A stretch of 64,000 nucleotides of DNA from Anthoceros angustus (Eukaryota; Plantae; Anthocerotophyta), in contig MU008166.1 of the NCBI GenBank assembly GCA_010909165.1, positions 1,612,001 to 1,676,000 of the forward strand, given 5' to 3'. Below, one piece after another: positions 8,813 through 26,149 of this stretch; position 1 is the first letter of the stretch; each line of letters opens with the position of its first letter. Both the position numbers and the translations under genes were made by a program. Below the pieces are notes generated by a model that did not search any database, was not told where the DNA came from, and saw only the letters and a list, made by a program, of their open reading frames with translations.

Positions 8813-9714
8813 AACATATTGACGCCAATCTTCCTCATCCGGCGTTTGGCTCCAACCCGAGAATAGGTGCCAAACAATTGTGGCGGGACCTCAAGGATGC
8901 TGGTTACAAAGATGATGATTTGGATGGTAAGATTTTGATTTGATGTCTTTGCAAGTTTTGATTGTCCTATTTTAACTCTGTTTTTTGGATTTGCCATAGG
9001 AGCCGTAATACGGGCATTGGAGCGCAAGTGGATGATGACGGCTGGTTTTTGGACAATTTGGTGCCTAGATTGAAGCCCGGGTTAAGTGAGGATCTTTCTC
9101 CTCTGTAGTTCTTATAGAAGATCTTTCAAGTCTTTGTTGTAACACGGCTTCTTGGTAACATATTCGATTCTTGCAGAATCGGGTGTGGCCTCCGCCCCTC
9201 GGGTGGGAAGCCTTAACCTCCCAAGTGTGGTCGACCGGTGTGGAGCAAGCCACGATGAAGTACTTGTTGAAGTTGAACCACTCCATCTCATGGAAGAGGT
9301 GGAAGAATTTGAAGAGGTTGAGGTATCCCTCTCTAAATGCAGGAAAAGTTTTTCAATCTCATGGCCTCTCATCGAATCGACGACAGAACTTGAAGCTCAA
9401 CGCCTTGTGTGAAGCTAGGTCCGGACTACGCCAAAGAGCTCAAGTCATCAAGGGTGAAGAGCATGAAGAGGAAGGAAATGAGGCTTCAACAAGTCCAATT
9501 TGAAGAGATCAAGGAGCGAGGAATTCTAGTTTGGTGCTTTCTTTTAGTTGCTCCTTAGAAACTCTTAGAAATTGATAATCGACATCGGCTTTTGTGGGAA
9601 TGTCCCTTTGTGTGTGTCTGGGGAATGGCCCCAATGTTTGTGAGTGTGTGTGTCTGGGGAATGGCCCCATGTTTGTTTGTGGGAGTCGTGGGAATGGCTT
9701 CTATGTTTGTGTGT

Positions 9715-11721: not shown

Positions 11722-12780
11722 TGCTAGTCGCCTTCGTCCCGCCCTTGAAGAGCAAGGGTTGCGGCTCCTCCACACTTGCAATCACCTTCACACGTTAGGG
11801 GGTTCGTCACAAGAACCTGAATAGTCCTCTCTGGAGTAGTCCGCCCGCTCGGTGACTTGGGCCTCGCTCCAGCACTTGGCTTACAAGAGCCTGTATGCAC
11901 AACGCAGTATCAACCCCAAAAGGAAAATTTGCATTATGGGGACGTCAAACCCCTTCTGATATTGCTCTTAAGGCAGTGTCTTTATTACATCCGTAAAACT
12001 GGCCTTACCGCTAGCTACCTATACACGCGCAAGTGACGCCAGATCCTTGCGCGTGTCTGCCTACGTCTACGGCGATAAGGCTCTTGTTGGTGATTCCGAC
12101 TGCAATGCCAAACTACGCACCGAGGCGCCCGGTCGATTATTCTCGACCCTTGTAGTCCTGCAGAGGCCTGACCCCTACCTCGAATCCGGTTGGGCTATGC
12201 CTTTGAGGGCGGTGACAACCATTGTCCTAAATCCTCCTTTGGCTCGGTGGCGGCCGCTCGGCGTCGCTCCTCGCTAGTCGCCGTCCGCCCTTGAAGAGCA
12301 AGGGTTGCGGCTCCTCCACTTGCAATCACCTTCACACGTTGGGGGTTCGTCACAGGCACGAATAGTCCTCTCTGGAGTAGTCGCCCGCTCGGTGACTTGG
12401 GCCTCGCTCCGACTTGGCTTACAAGAGCTGTATACTGTGATATCAACCCCAAAAGGAAAATTTGCATTATGGGGACGTCAAACCCCTTGATATTGCTCTT
12501 AAGGCGGTGTCTTTATTACATCCGTAAAGCCGGCCTTACCGCTAGCTACCTATACGCGCAAGTGACGCGGATCCTTGCGGCGTGTCCTCGTCTACGGCGA
12601 TAAGGCTCTTGTTGGTGATTCCGACTGCAATGCCAAACTACGCACCGAGGCGCCCGGTCGATTATTCTCGACCCTTGTAGTCCTGCAGGCTGACCCCTAC
12701 CTCGAATCCGGTTGGGCTATGCCTTTGAGGGCGGTGACAACCATTGTCCACTAAATCCTCCTTTGGCTCGGTGGCGGCGC
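11722..12780. repeat. Imperfect tandem duplication, ~550 bp period, LTR-like sequence
   Basis: GCTAGTCGCC...CCCTTGAAGAGCAAGGGTTGCGG recurs at ~11722 and ~12271 and stays colinear to ~12780. Confidence 0.85.
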
Positions 12781-12879
12781 ACGGTCTCCACCGCCCTTGT
12801 GCCATGATGGGTCCCCTACCCCCTGGTCCGTCCGAGGTGCATTGCCAGTGCATCCCCAACCAAGTCCCCTTAACGCGTC

Positions 12880-14110
12880 GGACTTGAGTCAGTCCTCGCC
12901 TCGGTCCGGGACCCCGTCAGTCCTCGCCTCGGTCAGGACCCCGGGTCGTCCTCGCCTCGAGTCGGGACCCGGTCCGCCTCGCCTCAGGAGTCCGGACCCC
13001 CGGGTCCGTCCTCGCCTCAGGAGTCCGGACCCCCGGGTCCGTCCTCGCCTCAGGAGTCCGGACCCTCCGGGGAACGGACCTCGTTACTTCCCTACACCGG
13101 GCCATCTTCCATCTTCCCATCTCGGCCCTCCTTCCTTTGGAGCGTTTTCCCTTACACCCCCCAAACCGGGTGCTGGGTGCGGGAGACCTACTTCTTGGTC
13201 CGCCGGGGCTTCTCCACCCGGCTGGCGTCTTCTCTCCGAGGGGCCCTCCTTGTTGCTGCTCTCATCTCCAAACAGGGCACCCAGGCTCCCTGCAAGCGCG
13301 TTCTCTCCCAACCCTTCCTCCCTCCAGGCTTCCTCCGACTCCTCCGGTGGCCCTATGGCCTCGGTCGGCTGGTGAACCGCACCCACTGCCTTCAGGAGCT
13401 CCGCGTGGTAGTAGGCGAAGTCCGAGTCGACCTGCTGTATGGCCTCCTCCAAATGAGCCCTCATGACTCGGTACTCGCGCCTCCACAGGTGCTCGGGCAG
13501 TCGAGCGTGTTCCTCCGCACGCTGGGCCATCCCTTCTCCAAGGTCTTCTAGCCGGGCCTTGGCGGCATCTCCGTAGGCCATTAAAGAAGCCTCGGCAAGC
13601 TCTTGAAGCCGCTGCTTCTCGTTGGCGCACTCCATCTCCTGTTCCCTCCGGAGGGCGGCCAATTGGTCTATTAAGGCCCGGGATTCCCCCTCCACTCGGC
13701 GCAGATGGACCAGCAGCTCTTGTTCCTCCTGCTTCCACTGGTGCTAGTCCGTCACCTGCTGACTTAGGAGCCCCATCTCCCTCTGGAGCCGTTCCGAGAG
13801 TTATCAGGTGGGTGGCCTCGGCGAGCTCCTTCTTGAGCTCGTCGATGTCCAACTGCTTGCTCCTCCGGTGGTCTTCCTCCACCCTAAGCCAGAGTTGGAG
13901 CCGTTCCACCTCCCGCTCGTGGTCCTCAATCCGGCCCTGGAGGATCTCGTTCCTCTCCTCCACCTCTCGAAGCTGTAGCTCTAGGGTCTCCTTCTCGCCT
14001 TCCGTCTATTTTCGCGCCTTGTCAGCCCCCTGGAGCTTCGTCTGGAGGTCTTTCATCACCCCCAACCGCTCCTGCATCTCCACTCCATGGGCCGTGCGTG
14101 CTTGCTCCGA
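12880..14110 (-). mobile_element. Degenerate retroelement-like coiled-coil ORF with a 33-bp tandem repeat at its 3' end
   Basis: Frameshifted E/R/L-rich coiled-coil ORFs (13262-13963, 13084-13695) and CGTCCTCGCCTCAGGAGTCCGGACCCCCGGGTC repeats at 12880-13065. No catalytic motif, so the class is inferred from context. Confidence 0.35.
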
Positions 14111-15955: not shown

Positions 15956-17402
15956 TATGTGGTTTGTGTGACTTGCGTTTGGAGATTGAGTGCCTCACTC
16001 TCATGGCAGACACCATGGGTGCACGTGATAACTTTGAGGGTCAAATTGACGGTGAGCTGGAACATGAGCTTCTTGAATCATTCCATTTTGATTGTCTATC
16101 AATGAAGCTTCCTAAAGTGCATTACTATGCTGCTGGTTGACTCTGTCAGCCTTTGTTGCTAATGTTGCGGGAAGCATTAGAGTTGAGGAGCGTTCACGAC
16201 TTTGGCCATTGTTGCAAATAGTACGGGAAGCATTAGAGTTGAGGACGATTATCACTGGCAGCTTGGAAAAATATGTTTTCTATAAGGGAAATCAACTCCA
16301 TTTTGGAAGACAAGCTTATGTGGAGCTCAACTCTTCATTGCGAAATGACAAGCATATGAAGCATTTGCCTACCTTAGGAAAACGACGACAAGCCCAGACA
16401 GGACTATAATTAAGGTATTCATGTCATGGGCACTTCAACCTTCATTTCAATTTTGAGAAGGGTATTGTCCCCTTTGCCTACCCTAAGAAAACAACGACAA
16501 GCGCATACAAGACAATAATTAAGGTATTCATGTCATGGCACTCCAACCTTCATTTCAATTTTGAGAAGGGTATTGTCCATGTTTATATGCAAAACAATAT
16601 AACTCACACAGGTGTGCACAACTTCACTTCTAAAATGATAATTATGATTTAGCATGAAAGCAATTCATTAGAGAAGAACAAAGAGCCTTATGAAAACACT
16701 TCTCTTTTTATCTATCCTTTTTGTTATTAATAGCCTTCAAATTTGTTGTGGGACGTTAGTCTTGGAGAACCTTGGGAGAATTGGGAAAAAACTTATGTAC
16801 GAAAAACTGGCATAACACGAAAGGTATCTCGTATGGCAATTACCAGTAATTCAAAGCTCAATTAGGTAGATTGAACCACTGGACTGGACTACTTGACTAT
16901 ACTTATGGTTGTTTGGTAACCCTGCTCTCCGGTTACGCACACCGCAGTTAGACTTTCCGGTGACTTCGGCGGAACAAGACGCCGAACCGGGCCAGGTGCT
17001 CTGTACCGGGAAAAGGCTCAAACGCGAAATCCGGCCCAGGAAAGCCCCCGGGCACCTGGCTGCCTGGCACTACAAAGGCAGAGTCCAAGTCAGCTGGTGT
17101 ACATCGAACCTCTCGTGAAGGCTCAGGTGAGGCGGTGACGTGCTTCAGGACATTGTGGCTGCGCCGGCGTCTTCGGCTGCGGCGGAGCGTTGTTTTTCTT
17201 TCTGCGCCGGCGCCGATTCCAGCGCTCGCAGGTGAGATTTCTGCAGACAAGCGGTGATTTGGAAATTTGGCAGAAGAAAGTTCCGAGGAATGAAATTTCC
17301 TTCTCAGTCTCCTGCTCTGGCTATGGTGTGTTTGTACGGGGAAGGCCTGGTGAGGTTTTGAGCGGGCTGGCTCCTGCTTTGTGGCTTTCAGAATCGGGAG
17401 CT

Positions 17403-19524
17403 ATGGCGGAGAACGGCGGGGCAAACGGGGAGCTTGGGAATGCACACACCGGCAGCTGCTGCCATGCCGGGCCCGGTTACGCAACTCCCTTGGACGCCAT
17501 GCGCGGGCCGCGGGAGACCATACTCTACGTCACGGCTGTGTACACCGGTGAGTGACTTGAGCCTGGGAGATGTTCGGGTTGGGAGCAAGTGTTGGACTGG
17601 CCGGGAAGATTTTTTTTATTTCCTATGCTTTTGTGGCTCTTTGTAGGGACGGGTATAGAGCAGCCGGATTATCTGGCGACGATAGATGCGGATCCCAAGT
17701 CGGCTACCTACTCGCAAGTTATTCATCGAACTCCGGTGAAGTACTTGAATGACGAGCTGCATCATACGGGGTGGAACGCATGCAGTTCTTGCTACGACGA
17801 CGCTTCTGCTCAGAGGCGGTTCTTGGTGCTGCCTAGCCTCGTGTACGTGGAAGGAAGCTCGTTGCTGGTTTTGCTACGAAGGTTGTTCTGTGGTGTGGTG
17901 TTGTGCGCGTACTGAGGCTAATGGAATGTTTTTTTAGCTCTTCGCGGATTTATGTTATTGACACGAAGGATCCCCGAGCGCCTGTCGTGCACAAGATAGT
18001 CGAACCGGAAGATATTGCAAGCAAGACAGGCCTGGCGTTTCCTCATACTTCCCATTGCTTGGGATCGGGGGATATTCTGGTCTCCTGCCTTGGAGATCCG
18101 GAGGGTAAGGCAGAAGGTGCAGGGTTTCTGCTTCTGGACTCTAAGTTCAACGTGAAAGGAAGGTAGGGTGCGTGCTTTTGCATGCATTGAGGAGGGTGAT
18201 GTGCTTCTGCTTGAACCCTATTCTTAATGTGAGGTGTCTTAATGTGTTTTTTGGCAGGTGGGAGAAGCCAGGCCACAGTCCAGCTTTTGGTTATGACTTC
18301 TGGTATCAGCCTCGTCACAAGACGATGATCAGCTCTTCCTGGGGCGCACCCTTAGCATTCACCAAGGGATTCAACCCTGCCCATGTTGCTGAAGGCCTTT
18401 ATGGGCGACATTTGTTTGTGTATGACTGGCCTGAAGGGACACTTAGGCAAACGTTGGATTTGGGGCTCCCTGGTCTCATACCATTGGAGGTATGTTGCTT
18501 CGATCTTCCTGAAAGCTAAGCACAAGTTTTCCTTCTTCCGTTGTTGGTTTCTTGAAGTCCTGAGCTATTCTATTGTAAATAGGTGCGTTTTCTGCATGAC
18601 CCGAGCAAAGATACGGGGTTTGTGGCGGGGGCATTGTGCGGTAACTTGATCAGGTTTTTCCACAAGGGTGATGGTGTTTGGGATCATGAGGTATGCAGCT
18701 GGCCAGAGGTTATAAAGGCTTGATTTTCTTTCCTGTCAAGATGGAGTTTGCAACTTCTAACTAGGCCAGCCACGGTTGTAGCATTGCAGAGACTTACACA
18801 CCTCATCCTGTCTTCTGCTACTGTTCATGAACAGGTTGTTCTGTCGATTCCCAACTTCAAAGTTACGAACTGGCTGCTACCGGAGATGCCTGCTCTCATC
18901 ACCGATTTTGTCATCTCATTGGATGACCGTTATTTGTATTTGGTTGACTGGCTTCATGGTGATATCCGGCAATATAACATTGAAAACCCATCCAAACCGT
19001 TCTTGGCCGGGCAGATCTGGGTTGGTGGGCTCCTGCAGAAGGGCGGCGATGTGTTTGTGGAGAAGGAAAACGGAGAACTCTGGCAGTCCACCGTCCCTGA
19101 GGTTCAGGTTAGTTTGGGAACCCTTTTTCAACTCGCAGTGGATGCCCTTCCATTTTTAACGAGGTCCCAAGTGATCATCAGATTCTTTGGCTTAAATTGC
19201 TGGTTTTTCTAACGTTCCATGGCTGAATGTGTTCGGTTGCAGGGACATAAGCTCCGAGGCGGACCTCAGATGATCCAGCTCAGTCTGGATGGCAAGCGGT
19301 TGTACGTGACAAACTCTTTGTTCAGTGCCTGGGACAATCAGTTTTACCCTAGCCTGGTGAAAGGTGGCTCCCACATGCTACAGCTGGATGTGGACACAGA
19401 GAAGGGTGGTCTTTCCATCAACCAGGACTTCTTTGTTGACTTCTCCAAGGAACCTCATGGTCCTTCTCTGGCTCACGAGGTTCGGTATCCAGGGGGCGAC
19501 TGCACGTCAGATATCTGGCTTTGA
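17403..19524 (+). CDS. SBP1: Selenium-binding protein (SBP56 / methanethiol oxidase family), 7 exons, ~486 aa
   Basis: Exons 17403-17547, 17647-17842, 17938-18162, 18258-18489, 18583-18690, 18835-19107 and 19243-19524, all with GT-AG borders and in frame. Motifs [66 protein letters not shown] and GGDCTSDIW. Confidence 0.96.
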
Positions 19525-20759: not shown

Positions 20760-22267
20760 CTAGTAGCCTGTAGGATAGGCTTCAGGTATATCTTTCGGCT
20801 CGGGTTCCGCAGGTAGAGGCCCCAGAGCGACAGTCACATCCACAAACAGCATTGCATCGTATCTGTTGGCCAAGGATGTGGGCACATAATTGCCCCACCT
20901 CTCATGTACCGGGTTATACACCACACCGATGGCCCTATTGCCCCGCACCTCCGCCAACGGCCCTTTCTTGTGCTTGTTAGACTCAAACGAGAAGGCCACA
21001 CCCTCCGCCTCCATCTGCATCGCTACAGCATGAAACTTTGCTTCCCAGCTCCCAGGCCGACCCGGCGGCACAGGCAAGACCTCCGTCAGCCCTCCCCATT
21101 GGTGGGACGCAACCACAGTGCCCTCGTAAGTGCTGAACCCTACCAGCTTCACGGCCTCCTCTCCGAACTGCTCCCTGGCCAGTCCTCCTAAATTGACCTG
21201 CCCTTGCCGCTTCATGCTGGTTGCCCTATAATCTCCGATATGCGTGTTGTGAGCCCAGACAATGCCCTTGGACTCCGGCCCGTAGTGATCCAGCAGCAAT
21301 TTCAGCGTCTCCATCATATGCCGGTCGCGCACATTCCACGACTTGTCGTCAGCCTGAATCATGCACCGGTAATAGGTCTCCGCGTTCTTCACGATGCGAG
21401 CATTCTGTACGGCATCGAAGAAGGCGCCGTGCTTGGCAGGCTCGATGCTGTCGAGCCGCTTCTGCAGCAGCTCCTGCAACGTCCTCACCACTCCCTCCCT
21501 GCATCCCTCTGGAAAGAAAATCAACGACCTGGCGTACTCCTGCTCGTCCTCCAGAAAAGGATCGAAACAGTCGTATCGCAGCTTCGCCTTCCTGGCCAAG
21601 GCTGGATCCACCTTCTCCAGTTCCGTCAAAGCTTCCTTGATGGAATCGAACAGCGAATAGACATCCAAGCCGTAGAATCCCACCCGCTTCTCAGGAGTGT
21701 CTACCTTCAGATTGTGTATCCTCATCCACCTCACCAGCTCCTCCACCTCTACATTACACCACATCCATGTCGGCCATCTCCTGCAAATCCAAAACCAGCC
21801 TTCAAGTTGATGATCCTTCCAGAGACATCCCTTTTCCATCATGGAGCATCAACTGAAGCCCGTCCTTCTTTGCAAATTTCTAGGAGTCCAACAAAGGCAG
21901 AAACGGATGTACCTACAACCTACTTGAAACAACGAAGGACTTCGTGCACTCTGCGCTTAAAAAGCAGGTCCTTGTTATGGAGGTTGAGATCTTGATCCAG
22001 CTCCATGTGGATGAATCGGTTGATGCGTTGCGAGGGGGGCCAATCTCCTTCGATAGCGATGAAATTGAATCCGTGCTTTTCCATGAGCTCCTGCGAGATG
22101 AGACGCCGCCACTCGTAGAATTCGTGTGTGCCATGAGACGCCTCTCCCAGCATCACGACTTTGGCACTCTTCACCCTCTTCACCAGGTCGCTCAGGTCCG
22201 CCACGGACTTGAACGGCTTGCCAACGCTTGCCAATTCCCTCACCAAGGTGGAGGCCGGTCGAGTCAT
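20760..22267 (-). CDS. Erythromycin esterase (Ere)-family protein, bacterial type, 2 exons, ~454 aa
   Basis: Exon 22267-21924, GT-AG intron 21923-21781, exon 21780-20760; splicing restores CFK-RWPTWMWCN. Motifs VMLGEASHGTHEFY, FIAIEGDWP, FYGLDVYS, SWNVRDRHM, IVWAHNTHIGD and RAIGVVYNP...GNYVP...YDA. An in-frame upstream ATG at 22384 is an alternative start. Confidence 0.9.
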
Positions 22268-23229
22268 GATCGCAAGCGGAATTCCAACGCAACAGACAAT
22301 GTTTTCTGCACGATGGATTGTGTGCCCCCAGGAGTAACCAAAATTCAGCATGCAACCTGCAGCTCCCTTGTTCAGGTAGGACATGCGCCACCCAATCCTC
22401 GCCTATTCTGTCCCAAGGACAGCGTCACTCGCGACAGCATCTGCATCAGAGCTACAGGCCGCCGCCAGGGGAACTGAACCAACACTACGCTACGCGTGTC
22501 GCCTGCCGTCTCCAGTGTCCCTAGTTCGAACAGCGCCGCCTTTACGTACTTAAAAAGAAATAAAATGATAGCATATTCTAAGTTTTTATTTTTCTATACA
22601 GGTATAAGAGATGGGTATTAACTGAGCCATGAGTAGCCCACCTGAGGCTAGACATGATGCCCTCGTCTTCTAATGTGCGAGGTCGTGAGTTGTTAGTACC
22701 CTACGGATTACTATAGATTATGAGCTTTACGTACGTATGCTCGGAAAACTTCTCCACACGACCTTCACATGCTCTCCGTATGAGCTTTGCATCTCCTTCT
22801 TGGTGTCTTGCTGTGGTAGCTGCAAGCACTTGCGTCCCATCCAAAGCAACAAGGAGGCAGACCCGGATAGAGCCGAGCGATTCTCAGACCTGGGCATGCT
22901 CGACGACGTGTTTTGATTCCATTCAACCTGGATCGCGACAACTACGGGCATAGTGATGGCGTCAGCATGTGACGGTTAGTGCGCGCGTGCTGCACTGGCG
23001 AGTGTCGTCACTTCCATGTGACTGAAGTACCAGCTTCAGTTAGTCACGGTCCTGCTGTATGTCGCCTGTGACATGAAACCGATGGCGTGAACCAGCTGAT
23101 GAGAGCGTTACGGCTTCCTTGCACTGCTTAAGTAATCGCACACCCTGACGAGCACACCTGCTGCCAGGCAAAAGCCACAAGAAGCTCTTGCAATTGATAG
23201 GCTCGAACAAGACTTGTAGTCCCGCAACG

Positions 23230-24539
23230 ATGGCTGAAGAAAAGCCTGATGTCTCGATTGCGGGACAGGTCCGCCTTCTGGAGCTTACCTTCCAGTTTGT
23301 GCAGTCGACAGCACTGAAGGCTGCCACACTGCTGCGGATACCAGACATAATAGCTGAGGCTGATGGACCGCTGTCTTGCGACGAAATTCTGCACAGGATC
23401 ACAGTCGATGAGGTGAGGGACGGGAAGAAGCGGAGTGCGGACTTCTTAGGGCGGATTCTCCGAGTGCTGGTGTCAGCGGGAGTTTTTTCTGCTACGCCAG
23501 ATCCTGATGACCGTGTTTCCAGCGGAGGTGGTAGGCAGGCTTTGCGCTATGGTCTGAACAACGTGTCAGAGCTCCTCGTGACCAAGAGCAGCGCCAGCTT
23601 GTCTCCATTCATTATGATGCAGCTCGATTCTCATTTCCTGGCACCATGGCAGAATCTGCATCGAGCAGTCCAGACAGGCGAATACGCCTACAGTCTGACG
23701 CACGGCAAGAACATGTGGGAGCATTGGACCGAGGAGCCTGCGCACCAGAAACTGTTCGACCAGGCCATGCAGGCTAGTTCTCGGGTCTTCCTGTCTTCCA
23801 TACTGAACAAGTGCAATCTCTTGTTCAAGGACGTGAAGGGAGTTCTCATGGATGTTGGAGGCGGGTTAGGGACATCCCTGTCTGTCATTCTGCCACGGTA
23901 TCCTCACCTGCGTGGTATCAATTTCGATTTGCCTGTTGTGGTAGCTTCAGCACCAGAGATCCCTGGTACATATGCTCCTCAAACCTCCCTTCCCGTGCAG
24001 TGGTAAATCCCGCTCGCTGGCAAGCATAACAATCTTGAAGTGGCACAAGTTTTCTAACAATCGTAGTAAGTGCTGTGGTGTGCAGGAGTCCAACATGTCG
24101 GAGGGGATATGTTCCAAGGCGTTCCACATTCCGACGCCATTTTCATGAAGGTAGCTACCTCTTCACTGCCTTTCACAGCTTGCTATTCAATTTGCATAAC
24201 ACCTTATCCCGACACCGACACGGAGGTGCTCTGTGGTGTGTGCAGTGGATTCTGCACGACTGGGACGATGAGAAGTGCATCCATATCCTTAAGAACTGCC
24301 ACAAAGCTTTGCCAGACGACGGCAAGCTCGTTGTGGTGGAGTCTATATTGAAGCCAGGCAACAACGACGTTCAAGCCAAGCTGGCAGAAGAATTGGATCT
24401 CTTGATGATCGCACACACTGAGGGCGGCCGGGAGCGGGAAGAATGGCAGTGGCGGCACCTCTTCGCCGAAGCTGGCTTCACCAGAGTGGACATCCTGGAC
24501 ACTGGCCATGTCCTGCATGTCGTAGAATTGCGGAAATGA
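23230..24539 (+). CDS. Plant class II (COMT-like) SAM-dependent O-methyltransferase, 3 exons, ~364 aa
   Basis: Exons 23230-23965, 24086-24150 and 24246-24539. Motifs LKAATLLRIPDII (dimerisation), MDVGGGLG, GINFDLP, GGDMF, AIFMKWILHDWDD and GGREREE. Confidence 0.95.
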
Positions 24540-25104
24540 AATGAGGAAGATATCTCGTGTCTCCTTCAAGTTCATCGTCGGTGTAAAAGCAAGCAAAGGC
24601 AAAGAGGCCGTCGTGTAGGTCGACCAAAACCCTAGAAAAGGATTAAGCAAAACAAGTGTGTGCCGAAGCCCGCGATGTCTGGCCGGTGTGCTGCGTGTCC
24701 GCCATGTATTGAACACCGCACAAATGAAAGGCAGAGTGATGAGCATCCCTGGAGCTTGTCCGAGGCAAGCCCCAGAGGGCAGGCGAGCGGCAGGTGCATG
24801 CATGGAAGGCAGAGAGGCGAGGTGACACGAGGGGCAATGAGAGCCCGCCACGGCAACGAGGCACTTGTCCCCTCCCGACTTGGCTTTTCACTGCGACCCC
24901 GTTATCTGCTCTCGGGCGGAGTAGAAATACCGTTCCCGCGGCAGATCAGGCACCCAAGTTTCTTCTCGACTCGAACGTTCTTTCCCGTCTCTTAGAGAGC
25001 TTCCGCTTCACGACTCCTACACTCTCCTGTCCCTTTCAGCTTCCGCTCCAGCAATCATTCTCGCGACAAGGCAACCCGTCTCGTACAGTTCTTCACTTCC
25101 GGCA

Positions 25105-25908
25105 ATGGCAGCTACAAGTATGGCAGCTATGGCGTCCGCGGTCGCCGCCCCGTCCGCATTCTCGGTGCGGTCGCCGGCGGTGAGCGCCAGCAGGAGCGCG
25201 CGGCTGCAGAGCTCGAGCGCGAGTCTGGCGGGGCTGCGGTTGCGGCACCGGTCTGCTGCTCCGGCCGCCCGCCGGGCGCCGGCCGTGCTGGTCCGCTGCG
25301 AGGACGATCCCAGCGGCATTCTCGACAAGGCGCAGGAGGCGGCCGGAAACGTGAGCGACAAGGTGAAGGGAGCGGCGCAGCAGGCGAGCGATTTCGTGCA
25401 AGGCAAGTCGGGCGAGGCCAAGAACCAGGCGCAGGGCGCGGGGCAGGAGCTGCGCTCCCGCACCGACGACGCGCTTTCGCAGGGCCAGAGCCACGCCGAG
25501 GGCCTCAAGTCCGAGGCGCAGAGCAACGCGTCCGGGCTGGGCAAGCAGGCCGACGGCCTCAAGGACCAGGTGAGCGGCGCGGCGCAGCAGGCAAGCGATT
25601 TCGTGCAAGGCAAGTCGGGCGAGGCCAAGAACCAGGCGCAGGGCGCGGGGCAGGAGCTGCGCTCCCGCACCGACGACGCGCTGTCGCAGGGCCAGAGCCA
25701 CGCGTCTGGGCTGGGCAAGCAGGCCGAGGGCCTCAAGGACCAGGTGAAGGGCGGGCTGGACCAGGCCAAGAACAGCATCACCGGTGCGGGCCAGGAGGTG
25801 CAGAACAAGGCGTCCGAGGCCGGCTCCACTGTAAAGTCTAACCTGGACGACCTGTCCAGGAACGCGCAAAACACCGCCGAGGACGCCAAGCGCCGCATCC
25901 AGCAGTGA
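25105..25908 (+). CDS. LEA-like hydrophilic repeat protein with predicted plastid transit peptide, 267 aa, intronless
   Basis: Ser/Ala/Arg-rich N-terminus ending VLVRC, followed by A/Q/G/K/D-rich helical repeats without Trp or Cys. A 43-aa segment is duplicated. Confidence 0.75.
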   Translation: MAATSMAAMASAVAAPSAFSVRSPAVSASRSARLQSSSASLAGLRLRHRSAAPAARRAPAVLVRCEDDPSGILDKAQEAAGNVSDKVKGAAQQASDFVQGKSGEAKNQAQGAGQELRSRTDDALSQGQSHAEGLKSEAQSNASGLGKQADGLKDQVSGAAQQASDFVQGKSGEAKNQAQGAGQELRSRTDDALSQGQSHASGLGKQAEGLKDQVKGGLDQAKNSITGAGQEVQNKASEAGSTVKSNLDDLSRNAQNTAEDAKRRIQQ

Positions 25909-26149
25909 GGACTGGAGCAGTGAGCGCTCTCCTTCCAAGCTGTCGGCTGTTTTTGTGTGTACAGATGGAGATTGCGTGCGCAAGGGGCCTTGCCTTAGCC
26001 CCATTTTTCCTGCTAGGGGGACCTGGAACAGTTCTCAACTAGCAGGCACCAATTGCCGTGATGACTGATCTGCGAGACTTGCCCAAGATTCGCAGCTGGA
26101 TTCTTAACTGCTTTGTAAAGTGTGGCTGTGTATTTTGTTTCTTTGAAAC

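Follow-up and report, generated by a model that had tools for sequence, protein, structure and literature searches.

Erythromycin esterases (Ere) are the products of resistance genes borne on plasmids or integrons. A gene of the same family, PF05139, lies on the minus strand of a 64,000-nucleotide stretch of DNA from the hornwort Anthoceros angustus (contig MU008166.1, positions 1,612,001 to 1,676,000; hereafter the window, in whose coordinates all hornwort positions are given). The enzymes EreA-D resemble the hornwort protein in belonging to PF05139, in their fold, and in the five residues of the mechanism proposed for EreC, in which H50 acts as the base, E47 holds H50, E78 and H289 position water, and R261 stabilizes the transition state (PMC7979712). 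However, the hornwort protein is 16% identical to EreC in a structural alignment and scores far under the cut-off of the model for EreB. The best solved relatives, by sequence as well as by fold, are BcR135 and BcR136 of Bacillus cereus (PDB 2RAD, 3B55, and 2QGM), for which esterase activity on p-nitrophenyl butyrate has been reported (PMC7979712). Their own role is uncertain; the deposited entries name them as proteins of succinoglycan biosynthesis. BcR135 and BcR136 have both lobes and the GExxHG, E, and AHNxH motifs of the hornwort protein, but they are just 18–20% identical to it.

Gene transfers from bacteria to bryophytes were reportedly catalogued by Yue et al. in 2012. In A. angustus, 14 transferred gene families from other donors have been described (Zhang et al. 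2020, PMC7027989), and 1,809 transferred families have been listed across 49 streptophytes (Dong et al. 2025, PMC12513842); the genome paper of Anthoceros agrestis and Anthoceros punctatus contains no transfer analysis. The catalogued bryophyte transfers are similar to the hornwort gene in that they are bacterial-type metabolic enzymes with few introns, a GC content above that of other genes, plant genes on their flanks, and sharing among bryophyte lineages. By contrast, neither the erythromycin esterase family nor a Bdellovibrionota donor is named in the papers on A. angustus and on the 49 streptophytes (PMC7027989, PMC12513842). A search that stopped short of the extensive supplementary tables accompanying Ma et al. 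2022 and Dong et al. 2025, where an entry for the Sphagnum gene may already exist, found no literature linking erythromycin esterase or PF05139 with bryophytes.

The gene described here is very probably a hornwort nuclear gene that derives from a bacterial gene of the type now present in Bdellovibrionota, gained an intron, has been kept under purifying selection, and encodes a stand-alone hydrolase. It is one more case of the known transfer of genes from bacteria to bryophytes, and it neither opens nor settles a major question. Its value is that of a well-supported further case whose donor group, the predatory Bdellovibrionota, is rather unusual. The states of this single gene differ among three lineages, with a gained intron in the first, no intron in the second, and pseudogene decay in the third. 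Furthermore, a family that is known almost only from antibiotic resistance has conserved members in plants.

Structure of the hornwort gene

The sequence and its translations place the esterase-family gene at positions 20760–22384, in two exons on the minus strand, with the following parts.

21924..22267, minus strand: coding part of exon 1, from the probable initiator methionine (22267–22265) to the splice donor; residues 1–114 and two bases of codon 115
21781..21923, minus strand: predicted spliceosomal intron of 143 nucleotides, phase 2, GTAGGT...TTTGCAG
20760..21780, minus strand: exon 2, residues 115–454; stop codon TAG at 20762–20760
22268..22384, minus strand: possible N-terminal extension of 39 codons, or else 5′ untranslated region (UTR); upstream in-frame ATG at 22384 and in-frame TAG at 22405–22403

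Exon 1 ends with CGT TGT TTC AA at 21924, and exon 2 begins with G AGA TGG CCG ACA TGG ATG TGG at 21780. If the intron is retained, the frame stops at once at the TAG at 21922–21920. The joining of 21924 to 21780 produces an open frame of 1482 nucleotides (493 codons) from the ATG at 22384, or of 1365 nucleotides (454 codons) from the ATG at 22267. In RCFK-RWPTWMW, the lysine is encoded by the codon that spans the junction (AA|G); at this place the aligned proteins of Sphagnum and of P0002, an unnamed relative described below, have SFKRWPTWMW, and RWPTWMW is invariant in the alignments of relatives. The restored motif, the GT-AG signals, and the stop in the retained intron are the grounds on which the intron is predicted. 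The GC content of the intron is 45.5%, compared with 55.8% in the coding exons. The gene structure as read exceeds chance by far.

The methionine at 22267 (MTRPASTLVRELASVGKPFKSVADL) lines up with residue 1 of the Sphagnum protein (MSREATSLVKEISGAAKSFQSIADL), and the relatives are 430–460 residues long. Therefore, the product is taken to be 454 residues long, probably starting at the ATG at 22267, with the 39 codons upstream as a likely leader. None of the homologues compared has the 39-codon extension. A transit peptide was considered for this segment and rejected, because the segment is not rich in serine, threonine, or arginine and the homologues lack it. Exon 1 carries the GEASHG motif (residues 41–46, with E42 and H45) and AIE (71–73, with E73), and exon 2 carries WNVRDRH (with R266) and WAHNTH (290–295, with H292 and H295). 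The coordinates, intron length, junction, and motifs proposed in an earlier note, which was made from the window sequence alone, all proved correct in the sequence, the translations, and the alignment.

Relatives and origin of the gene

In a collection of 5.8 billion proteins, the best match to exon 2 is a Sphagnum cluster with 75% identity, which comprises S. magellanicum KAH9537736.1, entries from S. jensenii, and Sphagnum DNA from peat metagenomes. The next matches are P0002 (Logan run ERR10032594), with 63% identity, and P0003 (Joint Genome Institute (JGI) sample 3300013895), with 60%. Both are from 1.7-kb single-gene contigs that resemble eukaryotic mRNAs, with ~100–260 nucleotides of UTR-like flank on either side, and no relative of P0003 closer than 57% was found in the protein collection. 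Hundreds of proteins follow at 52–59% identity, and the named ones are from Bdellovibrionia, Bdellovibrionota, Bdellovibrionales, and Bacteriovorax. A scan of prokaryotes with one genome per species provided 80 named loci, of which the closest belong to Bdellovibrio, Bacteriovoracaceae, and Oligoflexia, while Gemmatimonadota, Bacteroidota, Actinomycetota, Planctomycetota, Myxococcota, and archaea have members at 41–53% identity. Among the 120 best matches, which reflect the contents of the collection only, Sphagnum is the sole annotated moss, and there is no liverwort, lycophyte, fern, or seed plant. The close relatives found in a scan of JGI metagenomes are further Sphagnum copies only. Relatives carried on plasmids and megaplasmids of Rhizobium, Sinorhizobium, and haloarchaea were rejected as a source, since their identity is at most 49%.

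The proteins of Bdellovibrionota, for example those of Bdellovibrio bacteriovorus s4 (L007) and Bacteriovorax sp. LF-bin-345 (L010, protein P0119), are 53–59% identical to the hornwort protein over the full length, and the best matches among them reach 55–59%. They share with it a length of 430–460 residues and all the invariant motifs, and the plant clade is nested among them. Trees calculated using FastTree from 197 sequences and using IQ-TREE with the LG+C20+F+G4 model from 98 sequences agree with each other. In the IQ-TREE phylogeny, Anthoceros and Sphagnum are grouped with support of 100/94, P0002 joins them with 100/100, and P0003 with 98/95. This eukaryote clade lies inside a clade of 76 sequences (100/99), in which 16 rows are named, 15 as Bdellovibrionota and one only as “uncultured proteobacterium”. 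The nodes between the eukaryote clade and the base of the 76-sequence clade have support of 99/95, 96/77, 95/76, and 94/89, and the immediate sister of the eukaryote clade is a group containing Bacteriovoracaceae, with weak support of 75/42. Forcing the eukaryote clade outside the Bdellovibrionota clade costs 25.7 log-likelihood units (approximately unbiased (AU) test, p = 0.036). Two unnamed neighbours in the tree are from contigs with dense bacterial operons. The nesting in the tree, the AU test, and the bacterial operons around these neighbours together make the direction of transfer, from bacteria to plant, well supported. The sequence relationships point to a member of Bdellovibrionota as the most likely donor. 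The homology search and maximum-likelihood phylogeny thus place the gene in a bacterial clade and extend its range to Sphagnum. The horizontal acquisition proposed in the earlier note is upheld by the supported nesting; however, the acquisition is not specific to hornworts, since Sphagnum has an orthologue.

The orthologue of S. magellanicum (KAH9537736.1; 458-residue product P0121) is 74–75% identical to the hornwort gene and is located on the 18-Mb chromosome CM038922.1. Like the hornwort gene, of which it is the sister in the tree, it is nuclear and set among plant genes; however, its neighbours, encoding a DUF1218 protein and a 2-oxoglutarate-Fe(II) oxygenase, differ from those of the hornwort gene. 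Because orthologues are known from this chromosome, from S. jensenii, and from the Sphagnum DNA of peat metagenomes, a one-off contamination is excluded. The 458-codon frame of Sphagnum is uninterrupted (L005, L006, and L089–L092), as are the prokaryotic relatives at the intron site. Therefore, the predicted hornwort intron is a lineage-specific gain, as the earlier note had suggested.

The comparison of the hornwort and Sphagnum genes gives a dN of 0.197, a dS of ~3, which is saturated, and a dN/dS of 0.066 (dN and dS, nonsynonymous and synonymous substitutions per site). The low dN/dS shows that the protein has been kept under purifying selection, and the saturated dS indicates that the split is old. 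The GC content at third codon positions (GC3) is 0.71 in the hornwort gene, 0.57–0.59 in the neighbouring exons, and 0.34–0.63 in the nearest bacterial genes. Transferred genes of A. angustus are richer in GC than its other genes (PMC7027989). The low dN/dS, the intact catalytic residues, and the host-like composition bear out the domestication of the gene that had been proposed.

The gene very probably entered from a Bdellovibrionota-type bacterium, either before the lineages of Anthoceros and Sphagnum split or with later passage between plants. The hornwort lineage then probably gained the 143-nucleotide phase-2 intron and a host-like composition.

Copies of the gene in Sphagnum also include decayed ones, which are present on three peat-moss metagenome contigs (L093:1302–2687, L094:892–2274, and L096:834–2199). 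Their DNA is ~95% identical to that of the S. magellanicum locus, flanks included. The three copies bear multiple in-frame stops, frameshifts, and a change of histidine to asparagine at the second catalytic histidine, and the copy in L096 has lost the RWPTWMW motif. Loss by decay is therefore visible in Sphagnum, which makes the patchy distribution of the gene easier to accept. The annotated model of KAH9537736.1 (462 residues; L003:8001–9802) removes positions 9273–9685 after codon 424 and ends with a 38-residue tail that is foreign to the family. A metatranscriptome contig (L004) contains the same splice at codon 424 and continues into the region of the neighbouring DUF1218 gene; the splice may represent an alternative or read-through isoform.

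Family, proposed reaction, and prokaryotic cassette

Exon 2 matches the Pfam erythromycin esterase profile PF05139 with 340.2 bits (E-value 2.9e-101) over profile positions 42–358 of 358, and exon 1 matches positions 2–30 with 27.8 bits, compared with a gathering cut-off of 26.4. The residues E47, H50, E78, R261, and H289 of EreC align with E42, H45, E73, R266, and H295 of the hornwort protein. The EreC chain 6XCQ is numbered with a 20-residue offset and has an asparagine in the column of the second histidine, because it is the H289N mutant. Every catalytic residue and more than 100 family-invariant positions are kept in the hornwort protein. Judged from the profile matches and these residues, the gene is a full member of PF05139 with a predicted intact active site, and the alignment of the five EreC residues agrees with the Ere-family motifs and active-site residues that the earlier note had recognized.

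Within the family, the hornwort protein is nearer to the BcR135 and BcR136 side than to the macrolide-resistance enzymes EreA-D in both sequence and fold. A phmmer search with the Sphagnum orthologue finds BcR135 with an E-value of 1.5e-16, BcR136 with 2.4e-09, and EreC with 0.02; a profile of 20 relatives finds them with 8e-27, 3e-27, and 2e-05, respectively. The score against the NCBIfam EreB model NF000209 is 25.6 bits, compared with a cut-off of 750. The fold was modelled on the Sphagnum orthologue, which is 75% identical to the hornwort protein. The AlphaFold2 model has a mean predicted local distance difference test score of 88 and a predicted template modelling (TM) score of 0.90. It superposes on BcR136 and BcR135 with TM scores of 0.72–0.83 and on EreC with 0.64–0.70. 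A Foldseek search with the model identifies 2QGM (E-value 8e-22) and 6XCQ (5e-16), and the next match is the one-lobed ChaN. The two-lobed Ere/BcR135 fold, present in the model of the Sphagnum orthologue, is therefore expected for the hornwort protein.

The product would be a two-lobed hydrolase of the Ere/BcR135-136 family that acts on its own, probably in the cytosol. If the analogy with EreC holds, catalysis should need no metal: H45, kept in place by E42, would take a proton from a water molecule that E73 and H295 position, and the activated water would then attack the carbonyl of an ester or lactone, with R266 stabilizing the oxyanion. The conserved residues and the fold indicate that the protein should be active on esters.

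The prokaryotic gene frequently comes third and last in a cassette, after genes for a phosphoribosyltransferase (PF00156) and a dienelactone-hydrolase-type hydrolase (for example L017, L024, L025 (1396–3978), L027, L049, L077, L084, and L087 (5351–7326)). Of the 82 prokaryotic loci, which comprise the 80 from the species-genome scan together with L087 and L088, 25 have a phosphoribosyltransferase gene and 16 have the hydrolase gene at a distance of no more than 3 kb. The cassette spans Bdellovibrionota, Actinomycetota, Armatimonadota, Myxococcota, Gemmatimonadota, and haloarchaea. In some proteins, either partner is fused to the esterase-family domain (P0135, P0141, P0142, and P0150 are among the cassette or fusion proteins). 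The annotation of some Rhizobium plasmid genes suggests a fusion with protein-isoaspartate methyltransferase. The prokaryotic genes are uninterrupted and often preceded by or fused to the phosphoribosyltransferase and dienelactone-hydrolase-type domains; by contrast, the hornwort gene contains an intron, stands alone, and has a host-like composition. A tblastn search with bacterial sequences detected no phosphoribosyltransferase or dienelactone-hydrolase partner in the 64-kb window. By its gene content, the cassette does not look like a context of antibiotic resistance, and we know of no described function for it. A substrate found in either the plant or the prokaryotic cassette would inform the other system.

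Genomic surroundings and alternative explanations

The esterase-family gene is flanked by the following genes.

17190..19212, plus strand: SBP56 selenium-binding protein gene with several exons (Pfam PF05694), on the downstream side of the esterase-family gene
23188..24006, plus strand: first exon of a plant-type O-methyltransferase gene (Dimerisation and Methyltransf_2 domains), upstream and divergent

The SBP56 gene is ~1.5 kb from the esterase-family gene. Positions 1–30 and 279–360 of the PF05694 profile match separate open reading frames (ORFs), and the gene is therefore split by introns. The O-methyltransferase exon is ~800 base pairs from the upstream ATG of the esterase-family gene (22384). 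The closest named relatives of the O-methyltransferase, with 35–41% identity, are from a lycophyte, conifers, and Ginkgo, and nearly all its named relatives are from land plants. The genomic context is that of a plant, because the esterase-family gene has an intron-bearing SBP56 gene on one side and a plant-type O-methyltransferase gene on the other; the Pfam matches of the two neighbours thereby confirm the plant flanks that had been noted before.

Hornworts carry many associated bacteria, and the gene of one of these could have been joined to plant DNA in the assembly, so that the locus would be a bacterial contamination or a chimeric contig. This is extremely improbable: a canonical GT-AG intron interrupts the frame, which stops immediately if unspliced, plant genes with introns are located ~1.5 kb and 0.8 kb to either side, the closest relative is on a Sphagnum chromosome, and the GC3 differs from that of the nearest bacterial genes. 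It is also quite improbable that the gene is a decaying relic, the frame of which is intact by chance and the expression or use of which is gone. The frame is open over all 454 codons and has intact splice signals, the dN/dS is 0.066, and the catalytic residues and more than 100 family-invariant positions are kept, even though pseudogene copies are present in Sphagnum and no transcript is found in the collections searched, which appear to be without hornwort data. Two or more separate acquisitions, instead of one ancient transfer with vertical descent and many losses, are unlikely. In such a history, closely related bacteria that are unsampled would have supplied the gene independently to Anthoceros, to Sphagnum, and to the source organisms of P0002 and P0003, or one plant would have handed it to another. 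This history would be consistent with the very patchy distribution, in which Sphagnum and two unnamed transcripts alone join the hornwort gene among ~5.8 billion proteins, and with the lack of shared synteny and of a shared intron between Anthoceros and Sphagnum; the topology (P0002,(Anthoceros,Sphagnum)) can be counted on the same side, as the two unnamed sources leave it without a species-tree check. However, the eukaryote clade (98/95) is unbroken by bacterial sequences despite the dense sampling of relatives, the saturated dS and 74% identity fit a divergence that dates back hundreds of millions of years, and the ongoing loss evident from the Sphagnum pseudogenes accounts for the patchiness.

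The function of the protein also has an alternative, that of a true macrolide esterase which shields the plant or its cyanobacterial symbionts from the macrolides of soil actinomycetes by opening their lactone ring. The Pfam family is the same as that of EreA-D, and the five catalytic residues of EreC are kept. Nevertheless, this role is improbable: the EreB model score is far below its cut-off, EreC is related by 16% identity and an E-value of 0.02, whereas BcR135 and BcR136 are far better matches with E-values of 1e-16 to 1e-27, and the prokaryotic relatives adjoin a phosphoribosyltransferase and a dienelactone-hydrolase-like gene rather than resistance genes. BcR136 reportedly does not inactivate macrolides, as stated by Morar et al. 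in 2012. Generic esterase activity is the only activity reported for BcR135 and BcR136 (PMC7979712). A microbial macrolide, which the earlier note had named as a candidate substrate, is possible but not favoured by the EreB and EreC scores and the prokaryotic gene context. A more far-reaching scenario, which is rather unlikely as a whole, is that the gene passed once from predatory Bdellovibrionota to an early land plant or a streptophyte ancestor, was then lost from most lineages, and survives in hornworts and peat mosses, as plants with close bacterial contact, in the form of a lactone- or ester-opening enzyme that disarms microbial metabolites such as macrolides, other lactones, and signalling esters. 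If this were true, the disarming enzyme would serve the plant in defence or symbiosis, as a type of enzyme that has not been described in plants.

The preferred explanation, a Bdellovibrionota-derived hornwort gene with a gained intron and a stand-alone product, has several points weighing against it. The splice junction is placed by sequence comparison. Among the ~5.8 billion proteins there is none at least 90% identical to the hornwort gene product, no transcript was found, and the 360-residue ORF of exon 2 has no record in the same collection. However, the collection appears to be without hornwort data, since the neighbouring O-methyltransferase matches nothing above 41%, and this explains the missing transcripts. 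The AU test gives a marginal rejection, and the group to which it was applied had been chosen with the tree already known. The taxon labels in the donor clade are mostly those of metagenome bins, and isolates account for two named rows only. The dating of the transfer depends on the source organisms of P0002 and P0003. Finally, the stand-alone function in the plant is an assumption, as the prokaryotic gene often works in a three-gene cassette.

Two further features of the window are apparent. The esterase-family and O-methyltransferase genes diverge across positions 22385–23187 (~800 base pairs) and could share a bidirectional promoter. Two 2-kb blocks, 12001–14000 and 24001–26000, each with long overlapping ORFs on both strands that lack a Pfam match (for example 25017–25898, 25093–26004, and 25105–25908), have a GC content of ~61%, compared with the window background of 50%.

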